DNA of 64,000 bases from Salpingoeca rosetta (lineage: Eukaryota; Protista; Choanoflagellata): the NCBI GenBank assembly GCA_033442325.1, contig JAWQFM010000005.1, positions 365,707 through 429,706 of the forward strand, read 5' to 3'. Under the pieces are notes generated by a model, which was not told the origin of the DNA, did not search any database, and worked only from the letters and a program-made list of their open reading frames with translations. Shown here piece after piece: positions 11,336 through 17,179 of the stretch. Each line of letters begins with the position of its first letter. Positions within the stretch are counted from its first letter, which is position 1. A program made the translations under genes and the position numbers.

Positions 11336-14206
11336 CTACACATCTCTCACGCCTCGGTGCTGTGTAGACACATCATGTTCGCGACCGACAAAACCCAAGG
11401 CAAGTTGAGCGAGGTTCATGACGGTGGCGTTGTGAAATTGGCTCAGAGCCGCCGTGCTGACCGCAAACACAAGCGCGTGGATGTCCTCTGGACTCGGCAT
11501 TGGGCCGTGCCGTGCGTGTGCCTTGGGTGTCTGGGTGGCGAGGTTGTTGAGGTTGTTGACATGGGGCAGGAGGCCCAGCAGCACATGCAATCCCGCCTCC
11601 TGAACACCTGCGTCTGCGATATGCGCACGCAGTGCGTTTAGAACTGCCATCGCCAGTGTGCAGCACCAACCACCGCCAACGAGGGCGTCCCCGACAACGC
11701 CACCTGTCCCCGCCAGCCAGCCGCTCTTGTCCTGGGTGCGTGTAGTGCTCGCGCTGCGTGAGAAAGGCATTGAGATGATTGAGGCGAGGCAGTCGCACGC
11801 ATCGATCACCACATCTGCGGCGTCACCGTGGTGCTGAAGCGCTTCCTCGAGCACCTCCAATGCGCCTGCCTTGAGTGCATCTGCAACGGTGTCACTGCCA
11901 ATCAAGGTGCGCACAATGTGACACCCGCTGCGCTGGATCTGAGCGTCACCCGCGTGCGTCTGCATTGCGGTAATCACCGCAGTTTGCCAGATGTTGTACC
12001 GCGTTTGTGCATCGTCTACGGCATCCCCGTGGTGGTGTCGTTGGTGACGCTGTTGCTGGTGCTGTTGTTGCTGGTGCTGTTGTTGCTGGTGGTGGTGGTG
12101 GTGGTGGTTTGCAAGTGCTTGCAACACACAACATGCGTGCTGTTGGAGTGCCTCATCGCCTTGGTGCTCCCACATGGCTGCCAGCACAGGTGTGGGGACA
12201 TCTTTCAGCATGAGCTGCCATGTCTGGAGTCGCCGCTGCTGTCGCTGCGGAAGCCGTGAAGCTGTAGTACTTTGGGTGCTTTCTCCACCTCGGCCTCCTC
12301 GCCCTCCTCGTGGTTCATCATCTTCTGTCCTCTGCTCCTCCTCTGACTCGCCACCACGCTCAGCAATCACGGCCATGTGCGTAACGGCGTGACGGAGAAG
12401 CAGGCACGCGCCACGCTGCAGCTCGAGCATGTGTGGGTGCTTATTCATGGCACTGATGATGGCCTTGATCCTGCCAGGTTGGGTTACGATTGATCTTGCA
12501 ATCACTGGTGAGCTGGAGGTGATACACGTGACGGCTGCCGCGATGGCGCCGGTAGCTGCCTCCCCAGAGTCCACGTGTTTCGCCACACCGTCGAGGATGG
12601 TGCCGAGGCAGCTGCTTAGCGTCCGATACAGCTCCTCATTATTCTTGGTCGTGTGTGTAACTTGATCATCTTCGTACATGTGGAACGCGGTAGGAACTGC
12701 GGGCTGGTCGTAACGACGGTCGCCATCAGCATCGTCGCTGTCATGATCGCTGTCATCGTCACCATGCACATAACTGCCATCGTCACCATCATCAGCACCA
12801 TCGCTTTCATCGCCATCATCGCTCTCTTCGTCATCAGCGTCATCGCCCTGGCCATGCCAACGGATTCGGACTGTGCCATGCGCGTTCTTGCCGAGCCCGC
12901 TGTCAGTGGGTGGCATCGAACAATCGTTCGAGGCGTGTTGGTGTGTGCGGCGGCGTGATACGCTGCTCTGTAGGTGCTGGTGTGGGCGTGCCGGGTGTTG
13001 CTGGTGCTCGCGTGACCTTGCTACCTTGTCTCCGCCCATGATTCTCAATGATGAAGGTTGTCGGCAGAGAGCAGGCGTGGATCGTGTTCGCGGCAGAATG
13101 TGGGATGGTGCCAGCAGTGACAGTTCAGCCCGCCCCTGCTGCTGCTGGTGGTGCTGCTGGTGCTGGCCGTGTTGTTGTTGTTGGTCGTGTTGTTGGTGTT
13201 GGTCGTGTTGTTGGCCGTGTTGCTGGTGCTGGTGCTGCTGGTGCTGGTGTTGGTGCTGGTGTTGGTGGTGTTGTAGGTGTTGGTGCTGCCAGCCTCCCGT
13301 CTTGCCAGGCATGGACACGGTTGAGTATTGTCCAAACGAGGTGGCAATGCCTGCCGAGTTGAGGGAGGGTGTCCAGGGCTCGGACATGGCATCGCTCACA
13401 CTGTCATCAGCGATCTCGTCGTCGTGTTCCTGGCGATTGTACAAGGGTTGACCAGGGTCAAGTTCGTGGTGATGCGTACCGAGGAACCCAAATAGCAGCG
13501 TCTCCAGTGGCGGTGGCGGCGTGGTGACGGCGTGGGCACGCCGCCGCCTCCTTCGGTTGCACAGGTGTGGTGCTTGCGTGTGGGCTGGCAGCGGTGATGT
13601 TTGATGTAGGTGGTGCTGCTGATGGGGCACGCGGCTGGGTGGTGCGGGTGAGGCTGTTGGGGAAGTCTGGGAAGGGGACTGCAGCATGTCCGAGGAACGC
13701 CGACGTTCCGCTGCTATGGCAAACGACTGCTGAATTTGAGGAAGGCTGCTGACAAGTTCCAGGACGCTGTGAGCCACGTGCAGCGGAGGTCGTGCCGTGA
13801 AGGCTCTGGCGCGTGCGAGTGTTGGGGGCGCCCTCTCAGCGATCCAGGTGCACGCGTGGTTGTCGCAGTGCGAAAGGAGGACGCAGGTGGCCGCGTAGTC
13901 GAAGGTTGTGCACATGCGCACGAGAAGCATGGGCTTGTTGCACTGAATGATGCAGTGGAGCTCATCGCGGGTACCAAAGGACCCTTCCCTTCCACGGCCG
14001 CCGTACTTGCTCGTCGCGAGAACGATTGCAAAGTCCACTGAAGAGATGAGGTTCTCCATGCTGTGCCTGATGGCGGCCTGCTTTCGCCGCGCCGCTGGCG
14101 GGCTCATGAACACAACACAGTTCAGCACGCTGTCTTGCAGCCACCGCTGCAGTGCGTGCGCCTCATGCCTGGCTTGCGATTCCTCAAAGGAGACGTAAGC
14201 GAACAT
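11336..14206 (-). CDS. Intronless protein of about 956 aa: N-terminal TIR domain, long His/Gln/Asp-rich disordered linker, C-terminal armadillo-like repeats
   Basis: N-terminus MFAYVSF...ALQRWLQ...VFMS...VDFAIVLATSKYG...GTRDELHCI...KPMLLVRM follows the TIR beta/alpha pattern. C-terminal repeats IISAMNKH..LQRGACLLL, VLAAMWEH..LQQHACCVLQAL, VITAMQTH..IQRSGCHIV, LEEALQHH..VVIDACDCL and VLNALRAH..VQEAGLHVL resemble LRRK2-type ARM repeats. Confidence 0.75.
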   Translation of the reverse strand: MFAYVSFEESQARHEAHALQRWLQDSVLNCVVFMSPPAARRKQAAIRHSMENLISSVDFAIVLATSKYGGRGREGSFGTRDELHCIIQCNKPMLLVRMCTTFDYAATCVLLSHCDNHACTWIAERAPPTLARARAFTARPPLHVAHSVLELVSSLPQIQQSFAIAAERRRSSDMLQSPSQTSPTASPAPPSRVPHQQHHLHQTSPLPAHTQAPHLCNRRRRRRAHAVTTPPPPLETLLFGFLGTHHHELDPGQPLYNRQEHDDEIADDSVSDAMSEPWTPSLNSAGIATSFGQYSTVSMPGKTGGWQHQHLQHHQHQHQHQHQQHQHQQHGQQHDQHQQHDQQQQHGQHQQHHQQQQGRAELSLLAPSHILPRTRSTPALCRQPSSLRIMGGDKVARSREHQQHPARPHQHLQSSVSRRRTHQHASNDCSMPPTDSGLGKNAHGTVRIRWHGQGDDADDEESDDGDESDGADDGDDGSYVHGDDDSDHDSDDADGDRRYDQPAVPTAFHMYEDDQVTHTTKNNEELYRTLSSCLGTILDGVAKHVDSGEAATGAIAAAVTCITSSSPVIARSIVTQPGRIKAIISAMNKHPHMLELQRGACLLLRHAVTHMAVIAERGGESEEEQRTEDDEPRGGRGGRGGESTQSTTASRLPQRQQRRLQTWQLMLKDVPTPVLAAMWEHQGDEALQQHACCVLQALANHHHHHHQQQQHQQQQHQQQRHQRHHHGDAVDDAQTRYNIWQTAVITAMQTHAGDAQIQRSGCHIVRTLIGSDTVADALKAGALEVLEEALQHHGDAADVVIDACDCLASIISMPFSRSASTTRTQDKSGWLAGTGGVVGDALVGGGWCCTLAMAVLNALRAHIADAGVQEAGLHVLLGLLPHVNNLNNLATQTPKAHARHGPMPSPEDIHALVFAVSTAALSQFHNATVMNLAQLALGFVGREHDVSTQHRGVRDV

Positions 14207-14503
14207 GGCTTGGCAAGCAGCAAGAGAGGAGGGAGGGATCTGCCTCTGCGCGGGGAGCACACGCGCGCCGAACCACTCTAGCCGGGACCCGAAGTGAAGC
14301 GTGTACGTATGTGTACTCACAGGTGCACCTGCGTTGGTCGATGGGAGGGGGACAACAAAGAACCAAGCCGAAAGGCAACGCAACAAGGCAGCCGACGTAC
14401 GGGCACATGAAATGACATGACAGGCTGTTCGGGTCACGTCGTGCGCAAGATGCCGCGATTCATGATGACACAAAGAAGGGGAAGAGGCGTCGGCGTTTTG
14501 GCT

Positions 14504-14549
<46 letters not shown>

Positions 14550-14723
14550 TGTGACATGACACTGATTTCACGTTTGGCTCGTGTTTTGGTGTTGCAGCCA
14601 CATTGCAACTCACGTTTGTATGAAAATGAACATGAAAATGATACGACTCGCTGGCTGGCGTTTATTGTTTAAATTTTTATTGGGCTTTTTTATTTTTTCG
14701 ACGTGTCGAAAACACGTTCAAAC

Positions 14724-15722
14724 ATGTGTGGAAGGACTGCCTGGTGGGTTCGGAAGTGTGTGTGCGGATATGAACGAGGCGCGAGAGAGTGGCTGAGCGA
14801 GGAGATGGGAAAGTGGAGTCGGAGGTGCTTGCTGGTGGAGCTTTATTGGCTGGATAGCTGGCTAGCTGGCTAGCTGGCTAGATAGCTCACGCACACACAC
14901 GTACATGCACACACACACGCACACATGCACACATGCATGCACACACGCACATACATGCACACACGCACATACACACACGCACATCGCTATGACAGTACGC
15001 TTGCACCATCCACGGTGGAGGCCGCATGCCGCAACCTGCCAGTCAAGGGTGTAAAGACCACAGGGGATACGGACCGCTATCGCCAATCACACAACACAAC
15101 ACCCCATCAAACCACGTCAGTCAGTCAGTGTGTGTGTGTGTGTATGTCTGTTTCTCATCAACAACCATCCACTGACATGCTACCTCGCACACACACATTC
15201 ACACACGCACACATTCACTCACGCATTCACTCACGCACACGCATTCACACAATTTAGGCCGGTGCTGGTGAAGCAGGGCGACGAGCTGGTTGTGCATTAC
15301 ATGCGGTGGGGCTTGGTGCCATCGTGGCACAAGGGCACTGCCAAGGACTTTAAGATGAACATGGTGAACGCGCGAAAAGAAGGCTTGGGCAACATCAGCT
15401 CCTTTCGCAAGCCGCTGGAACACGGCCAGCGCTGCGTCGTCATCGCAGAAGGGTGCGTGTGTACATGTGTGTGCGTGTGTACATGTGTGTGTGTGTGTAC
15501 ATGTGTGTGTGTGTGCGTCTATACATGTGTCGCCCTGTTGTTCCTCAAGCCGTGCGGCTCACGTGCTTGTTCATGGATCACCAATAGATTCTACGAGTGG
15601 CAGCACACTGAGGATGGAAAGAAGCAGCCTTACTACGTGTTCTTCTCATCCGACACAGCTACGCCGCCAGCACTCGGTATGGGCAATACGTTGTGTGTGC
15701 GTGTACGTGTGTGTGTGTTGTG

Positions 15723-15769
<47 letters not shown>

Positions 15770-16690
15770 CGTGTAGATCCTTAGATCCTTCTTGACACAT
15801 GTTTGAACACTCGTGCCCAATCAAGTCGGCACACTCCTTACAATTCGCCCCCCCTCCCCTTCTCGTGCTTACAGCGGTCAAAGCGGAGGAAGGAAAGCCG
15901 GACGCAAGCAGCACCGCCACCATCAGCGGTCGTGCGCCCGAAACAGCAACATCGCGCACACTTGGGGGGAAGCAGCAGAGGCCGCTGCTCGCCTTTGCGG
16001 CGTTGTACGACGTGCACCAGCCGCCACGCAAGAAACAGCAGCCGCAGCAGCCGCAGCAGCCGCAGCTGGGGAGGAAGATGATGACGCTACATGGCGCGGT
16101 GAAGAAGGAAGAGGAAGAGGACGGGGAGGAGGGACATGGGGAGAAGAAGGGTAGTGGTGTTGGTGCTGGTGGTCGTGTGAAGGAGGAAGTGGGAGGTGGC
16201 CACGCGCACGCTTCATCGCCGCCGAGTGAGCTGCGTGAGGAAAAGCCGCTGTACACCTACAGCATCATCACAGTGCCTGCAAGCAACGACCTGCGCTGGC
16301 TGCACGACCGCATGCCTGCCGTGTTGCCCACGCAGGAGGCCATGATGGCGTGGCTGGACACCAAGTCCACCCCTCTCCTAAAGGCCTTGCAGCTGCTTGT
16401 TCCATATGAGGGCCTTCAGTACTACCCAGTCTCCAGCAAGGTGCTTGTATGCGCTTGCGTGTGCTTGCGTGTGCATATGTGTGTGTGTGCATGGCTGTAG
16501 AGTGTTGGGTCTCTCCCCCCCCCCTCTCTCTCTCTGTGCAACCAGTGCTCATCTCGTTTGCGTGTGATTGCATCATGGCGTCTTCAGGTCGGCAACATCC
16601 GCAACACGGGCGAGGAGTGCAGGCGCCGCATCCAACTCGTGGACAAAACAAAACCAAAACAGAACGCCCTCACGGTATTGTACTTGTGTG

Positions 16691-16725
<35 letters not shown>

Positions 16726-17179
16726 GTTTGTGTTTTTGTGTGTGTGTGTGTGTGTTTGTGTTCGTGCGCGCGATGACGCGATGATGTGATGATGTGATGA
16801 TGTGATGATGCGAGGTTCATGTATCACACGCACACACATACACACACACGCACACCATACATACATACACACGCACACACGCACACGCACGCACACATTG
16901 CAGCGGTGGTTGGTGCCAAGGAAGAAAGAAGCGAAGAAGAGCAAAGAACCAAAGCGGGCAACCAGTGGCCATGATGGTGACAATCATGATGATGATGGCG
17001 CTGATGCCCACGTGCATCTTTCCAAAGCAGCGAAGCTTGGCCACAAACCACCACCGCCGCCACCACCAATGACGACGACGACAGCAGCAGCAGCAGCAGC
17101 AGCAACGGCTGCATCAAGCACAAGCAAGACCGGTGACGATGATGATGACGACGACGATGCAGTTGTCATCATTGACTGA
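14724..17179 (+). CDS. HMCES: Abasic-site-protecting SRAP-domain protein HMCES
   Basis: A 20-nt first exon (14724-14743) joins exon 2 to give MCGRTAC, which carries the catalytic Cys2. Other motifs: MRWGLVPSW, NARKEG, RCVVIAEGFYEW, YSIITV, LHDRMPAVL, PVSSKVGNIRN. Confidence 0.95.

Follow-up and report, generated by a model that had tools for sequence, protein, structure and literature searches.

We found that a 64,000-nucleotide stretch of DNA from Salpingoeca rosetta (the window) carries a gene for what is very probably a real, expressed TIR–spacer–ARM protein, with an N-terminal TIR domain, a long low-complexity spacer and a C-terminal solenoid of armadillo (ARM) repeats. We lean slightly towards reading it as a protein in which binding of a partner by the ARM solenoid would control a TIR domain that cleaves nicotinamide adenine dinucleotide (NAD+) by means of Glu82. 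The gene is one of five dispersed, uninterrupted S. rosetta paralogs, and there is a homolog in Barroeca monosierra. The parts of the gene are as follows.

11336–14206, minus strand: complete single-exon coding sequence, 956 amino acids plus stop, from the translation and the public gene model.
13757–14206, minus strand: TIR domain, residues 1–150, with a core of five β-α units (residues 2–120) followed by two helices.
13961–13963, minus strand: Glu82 codon; the residue, a candidate for catalysis, lies in the first turn of the helix that follows strand C.
12545–13756, minus strand: low-complexity spacer, residues 151–554, delimited by composition and unconserved in length or sequence across the family.
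13538–13555, minus strand: poly-Arg run of six Arg, residues 218–223, within the spacer.
11339–12544, minus strand: ARM-repeat solenoid, residues 555–956, six repeats with the motif A[LM]xxHxxxxxxQxxGCxxL.

The frame translates without interruption, and given the base composition of the window a run of 956 stop-free codons would arise by chance with a probability of about 5e-17. An identical 956-residue protein is public, encoded by a single coding sequence on scaffold GL832957.1 of S. rosetta assembly GCA_000188695.1 and annotated as an S. rosetta hypothetical protein. The first-pass annotation of this DNA had described a single-exon open reading frame among intron-split genes and had guessed at a unicellular relative of animals. 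All three points hold: the public model is likewise a single coding sequence, the public models of the SRAP, guanylate kinase and MORN neighbours contain introns, and the public match is to a choanoflagellate. The frame stays open upstream as far as 14608, but through a (CA)n microsatellite, and the ATG at 14206 is the start in the public gene model as well. A tblastn search of the window on either side of 14889–14980 found no second copy of the TIR-ARM gene.

An exhaustive phmmer search with residues 1–150 returned 16 relatives besides the query at E values up to 0.001. We aligned 17 N-terminal domains, namely the window copy, 15 of these relatives and the cluster mate P0018; P0015, a repetitive match in five stretches, was left out. 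The AlphaFold2 model of residues 1–150 built from this alignment has five β-α units, with a predicted local distance difference test score (pLDDT) of 88.8 and a predicted template modelling score of 0.84, and its five parallel strands alternate with helices as in the flavodoxin-like fold of TIR domains. In a structural search of this model against 48,161 PDB representatives, independent of Foldseek, TIR domains came out on top, with the following Z-scores.

IL-1RAcPb TIR: 14.5 (129 residues, 3.1 Å).
RPS4 TIR: 13.0.
IL-18Rβ TIR: 13.0.
C. elegans TIR-1: 12.8.
RPP1 TIR: 12.6.
SARM1 TIR: 12.3.

In the model, then, the N-terminal domain is a TIR fold, and the TIR pattern that had been read from the letters is borne out both by the confident five-unit model and by its best structural matches. 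Among the relatives, sequence profiles agree. At E values up to 0.01, ten of the 17 aligned domains match TIR_2 and eight DUF4062, and relatives reach the Pfam cut-offs (P0009 with TIR_2 at 28.7 against 28; P0004 with DUF4062 at 30.7 against 24.7 and TIR_2 at 28.5 against 28). The ESM Atlas look-alikes of the domain, found from features and structure, all belong to TIR_2, ThsB_TIR or DUF4062 clusters. For the window protein Pfam is by itself unconvincing: over the full length the model CAP12-PCTIR_TIR scores an E value of 0.12. A PADLOC scan of the N-terminal domain gave no match, and phmmer with residues 1–150 against PDB sequences gave nothing beyond a chance match at E 1.

The fold leaves room for more than one biochemistry. 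The protein could be a non-catalytic adaptor whose TIR docks onto the TIRs of choanoflagellate TLR-like or kinase-TIR proteins while the ARM domain recruits partners, with Glu82 serving as a structural or interface residue. Enzyme TIRs (RPS4, RPP1, TIR-1, SARM1, ThsB and Cat1) lie 1–3 Z units below the top structural match, and the fold ranking therefore does not separate the adaptor from the catalytic reading. Foldseek, for its part, lists TIR domains mixed with cytidine monophosphate (CMP) N-glycosidases (BcmB, MilB), 2-deoxyribosyltransferases and DNPH1. These best matches, together with the eight DUF4062-matching relatives, would suit a TIR-like or nucleoside 2-deoxyribosyltransferase-like hydrolase that acts on a substrate other than NAD+, such as nucleotides or nucleic acids, and is targeted to a partner by the ARM domain. 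CMP N-glycosidases and 2-deoxyribosyltransferases are also the structural relatives that first hinted at the catalytic Glu of SARM1. We strongly doubt the hydrolase explanation.

The conservation of Glu82 bears directly on the adaptor. The other aligned N-terminal domains are 23–37% identical to the window copy, and only five columns are invariant among the 17 domains (L19, L23, G69, E82 and C99). A Glu that is invariant along with only four other columns is what one would expect at a catalytic site, which argues against a purely structural role, and we regard the adaptor as possible but somewhat unlikely. Searched against PDB sequences, the profile of the 17 domains finds the Roq1 TIR at E 0.0056 and the SARM1 TIR at E about 0.02, the latter over the first 60 residues only. 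In the Roq1 profile alignment Glu82 stands opposite Glu86 of Roq1 (‘CLEEL’), which we take to be the catalytic residue of Roq1; the alignment needs a gap of 4 residues in the loop that joins strand C to helix C. The model places Glu82 in the helix of residues 79–88, 11 residues ahead of strand D; Roq1 Glu86 precedes the stretch aligned to strand D by 12 residues in the same alignment. The codon at 13963–13961, singled out in the first-pass annotation, was confirmed on recheck. Judged by the alignments, Glu82 is likely the equivalent of the catalytic TIR Glu, and for catalysis by the TIR of the window protein itself we would put the chances at about even. A different S. rosetta TIR protein, F2UPN6, carries out Glu-dependent synthesis of cyclic ADP-ribose (preprint 10.64898/2026.04.20.719644).

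At the other end of the protein, the motif of the ARM repeats starts at residues 586, 677, 747, 789, 858 and 920 (window 11387–12451). At least five ARM-like repeats had been suggested at about 12480–11400, and six motif copies are now counted there. Three low-confidence or low-complexity loops (residues about 618–650, 700–726 and 816–842) interrupt the domain, and the window copy has His/Gln insertions within it. The AlphaFold2 model of residues 555–956 is all helical with a pLDDT of 79.1, and the stretches where confidence drops are those of the low-complexity loops. The window protein matches Pfam ARM_LRRK2 at E 3.9e-5, below the cut-off, and relatives exceed the cut-offs for ARM models (the paralog P0003 with ARM_LRRK2 at 30.2 bits, the Barroeca homolog with ZER1-like_2nd at 35.2 bits). 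The region is homologous across the family at 21–32% identity. Foldseek on the ARM model gave weak E values, the listed matches being mostly ARM proteins; the 50 best structural matches include LRRK2, catenins, importin-α, APC and designed ARM proteins, and the ARM of SARM1 is not among these 50. Both the right-handed three-helix solenoid and the ARM-model match that mark an LRRK2-type armadillo protein are thus found here. Besides TIR and ARM, Pfam detected no further domain in the window protein.

The spacer between the two domains is rich in Q (12%), H (11%), S (10%) and D (9%), and hydrophobic residues make up 25% of it, compared with 49% of the TIR and 41% of the ARM domain. It contains a His/Gln tract of 53 residues (306–358) and an acidic tract of 45 residues (452–496), and it is encoded by slippage-type (trinucleotide-type) repeat arrays. 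A Pfam match to TFIIA (E 8e-8, residues 172–497), below the cut-off and covering the spacer, was dismissed as an artefact of His/Gln low complexity. The six-Arg run may act in nuclear localisation, or it may be mere low-complexity sequence. With the alignment positions of P0001 residues 125 and 560 as landmarks, 126 to 435 residues separate TIR from ARM across the family, without sequence conservation; the upper value, 435, is that of the window copy. Given a length so variable among family members, the spacer probably does not serve as a conserved oligomerisation device. The first-pass annotation had described a linker of ~450 residues rich in His, Gln and Asp that replaced SAM-driven oligomerisation. 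The low complexity and the Q/H/D richness stand, but the length is about 400 residues, and the proposed role is not supported, given the unconserved length and sequence and the slippage-type repeats.

The TIR–spacer–ARM layout is common to all five S. rosetta proteins and the Barroeca homolog. The other members, the nearest relatives of the window protein, are as follows.

PTSG_01375: 855 amino acids, S. rosetta TIR-ARM paralog.
PTSG_03536: 735 amino acids, S. rosetta TIR-ARM paralog.
PTSG_05095: 659 amino acids, S. rosetta TIR-ARM paralog.
PTSG_03693: 492 amino acids, S. rosetta TIR-ARM paralog.
Barroeca monosierra homolog: 575 / 602 amino acids.

The five S. rosetta genes are spread over four scaffolds and have unrelated neighbours. 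In four of the five, the span of the coding sequence is exactly 3 × (residues + 1). In the fifth, PTSG_03693 (GL832962.1, L004:3001-4503), the annotated 24-nucleotide intron reads through in frame and restores the repeat motif AMHTHTRVSYIQRAACKVL; hence this gene too is an uninterrupted frame, and its ‘intron’ is probably an annotation artefact that leaves the protein 8 residues short. A maximum-likelihood tree of N-terminal domains unites the TIR-ARM proteins of choanoflagellates in one clade (support 96/93), within which the five S. rosetta copies stand together (91/94). Judging from the tree and the shared layout, the members appear to descend from a single TIR-ARM fusion followed by duplication. 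The remaining relatives have this TIR subtype, either by itself or together with ankyrin repeats, and come from metagenomes (including a Tara Oceans scaffold) and run assemblies. Word-index searches with the ARM region and with the TIR region of P0003 found only the queries themselves, by a method too insensitive to bear on the distribution of the family; with the full-length family alignment the same search, swamped by low-complexity words, returned P0003 itself and one marginal kinase match.

The gene is apparently transcribed. Eleven runs from three studies contain 1.00 of its sampled words. Four of the eleven (X6, X9, X10 and X11, from two studies) contain only 0.54–0.57 of the words of the SRAP-domain neighbour at 15000–17179. 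These values fall within the exon share of that region (0.49–0.62), and the four runs therefore behave as spliced RNA; for an intronless gene, DNA carry-over is a possible source of the signal.

Several observations weigh against a Glu82-dependent enzyme under ARM control. No model of the Pfam TIR clan (STIR) reaches its cut-off on the window protein, the best being CAP12-PCTIR_TIR at 16.5 bits against 24.7. The register of Glu82 relies on a profile alignment that requires the 4-residue gap, the register is off by 3 residues when the relative P0009 is aligned pairwise and without gaps to the SNC1 TIR, and a profile of the half from strand C to strand E finds no TIR in PDB sequences, only chance matches to Borrelia CspZ. 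Furthermore, the window copy has a branch of 1.62, longer than that of all but one paralog, and in several places its sequence differs from the family consensus (LATSKY instead of LGTxxY, RMC instead of KMC). The long branch also suits a decaying or functionless paralog, a fast-evolving duplicate with repeat expansions that has lost its selected function, as do the largest spacer in the family, the His/Gln insertions inside the ARM domain and Pfam scores lower than in the paralogs. However, the 2.9-kb frame is intact, the five family-invariant residues are all retained, both domains fold with confidence in the models, and the gene is covered over its full length by RNA-like runs from two or more studies. 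Decay is thus very improbable.

The reading we slightly favour, an NAD+-cleaving TIR under the control of the ARM solenoid, can be set out as a sequence of steps. The ARM solenoid would serve as a module for sensing or localisation by binding a protein or a peptide, and this binding would control self-association of the TIR. The assembled TIR would then cleave NAD+, or make a signal of the cyclic ADP-ribose type, through Glu82, a chemistry for which the catalytic TIRs of plants, of bacteria, of SARM1 and of another S. rosetta protein would be the precedent. The output could be an immune-like or stress response. A wider proposal is that the five intronless S. rosetta genes make up an expanding family of cytosolic immune sensors that is specific to this lineage, in which an LRRK2/ZER1-type ARM recognises microbial or damage peptides and so releases a Glu82-dependent, NAD+-cleaving TIR; as a whole this seems unlikely. 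The proposal that the window protein is an NAD-cleaving sensor in immunity or stress is reasonable, though not without precedent.

Animals have the choanoflagellates as their sister group, and genetic manipulation is feasible in S. rosetta. The family gives a direct route to asking whether enzymatic TIR signalling operated in the unicellular ancestors of animals, and it bears both on how a TIR is controlled without SAM or NB-ARC oligomerisation modules and on what LRRK2/ZER1-type ARM domains sense. Because standard Pfam thresholds miss the TIR of this family, protist TIR proteins may be undercounted by surveys that depend on such thresholds.

Public gene models give the following neighbours of the TIR-ARM gene.

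14724–17179, plus strand: coding sequence of an SRAP-domain protein, 450 amino acids over 2456 nucleotides, intron-containing.
9608–10513: coding sequence of a guanylate kinase, 141 amino acids over 906 nucleotides.
MORN protein: 190 amino acids over 1645 nucleotides.

The TIR-ARM and SRAP-domain genes are divergent, with 517 nucleotides between their start codons (window 14207–14723) that hold (CA)n and TG-rich simple repeats; TG-rich simple sequence occurs again at 14889–14980, in the 5' part of the SRAP gene. On the other side, an assembly gap of 377 N occupies window 8621–8997, preceded by a long (GT)n microsatellite at about 8485–8610. A short P-loop exon on the plus strand (9018–9083), followed by GTAAAC, begins 20 nucleotides past this gap and lies upstream of the guanylate kinase coding sequence, and the public guanylate kinase model probably lacks its first exon.

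The best known ARM and TIR combination is that of SARM1 and C. elegans TIR-1, which have the order ARM-SAM-SAM-TIR. The window protein has the reverse order, TIR–spacer–ARM, and Pfam finds no SAM domain in it at E values up to 10. Its ARM is nearer to LRRK2/ZER1-type repeats and its TIR has no special affinity to the SARM1 TIR. The domain order of the SARM1 family is absent, and the 50 best structural matches give no sign of homology to the SARM1 ARM, which senses nicotinamide mononucleotide (NMN) or NAD+. The absence of SAM domains, the reversed order and the LRRK2/ZER1-type ARM support assembly of the TIR-ARM architecture independently of SARM1. The first-pass annotation had likened the protein to an inverted SARM1: the independent assembly it proposed is supported, the analogy with SARM1 only in part. 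Regulation on the SARM1 model, with the ARM holding the TIR autoinhibited, is quite unlikely here. Choanoflagellates are reported to have SARM1 homologs that retain the catalytic Glu, and S. rosetta has SARM1-like proteins separate from this family (PMC6040629).

Compared with the plant TIR receptors Roq1, RPS4 and RPP1, the window protein lacks NB-ARC and has ARM rather than LRR repeats, and in the profile alignment with Roq1 it has 4 extra residues in the loop that leads from strand C to helix C. Its likeness to the ARM of LRRK2 and of ZER1-ZYG11 is one of repeat scaffold only: Pfam detects no kinase, Roc-COR or LRR domain. A further comparison is with the choanoflagellates themselves, where Arm, Ank and SH2 domains have been reported in intracellular proteins that also carry a TIR (Richter et al. 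2018, PMC6040629). The TIR-Arm proteins among them share with ours the lineage, the domain co-occurrence and the lack of a transmembrane segment. That survey used Pfam calls, whereas both domains here lie below or near the Pfam cut-offs, and so the family may not be among the genes it counted. The locus tags of the paralogs received no mention in the literature that we searched, and the UniProt and EukProt identifiers of the family were not found in the supplements of two 2026 TIR surveys, some files of which were searched in part. Besides the preprint on F2UPN6, a second 2026 preprint sets out several uncharacterised TIR clades confined to eukaryotes. Since TIR with Arm had already been reported in choanoflagellates (PMC6040629), the architecture class is known; the members of this particular family are publicly annotated only as hypothetical proteins.

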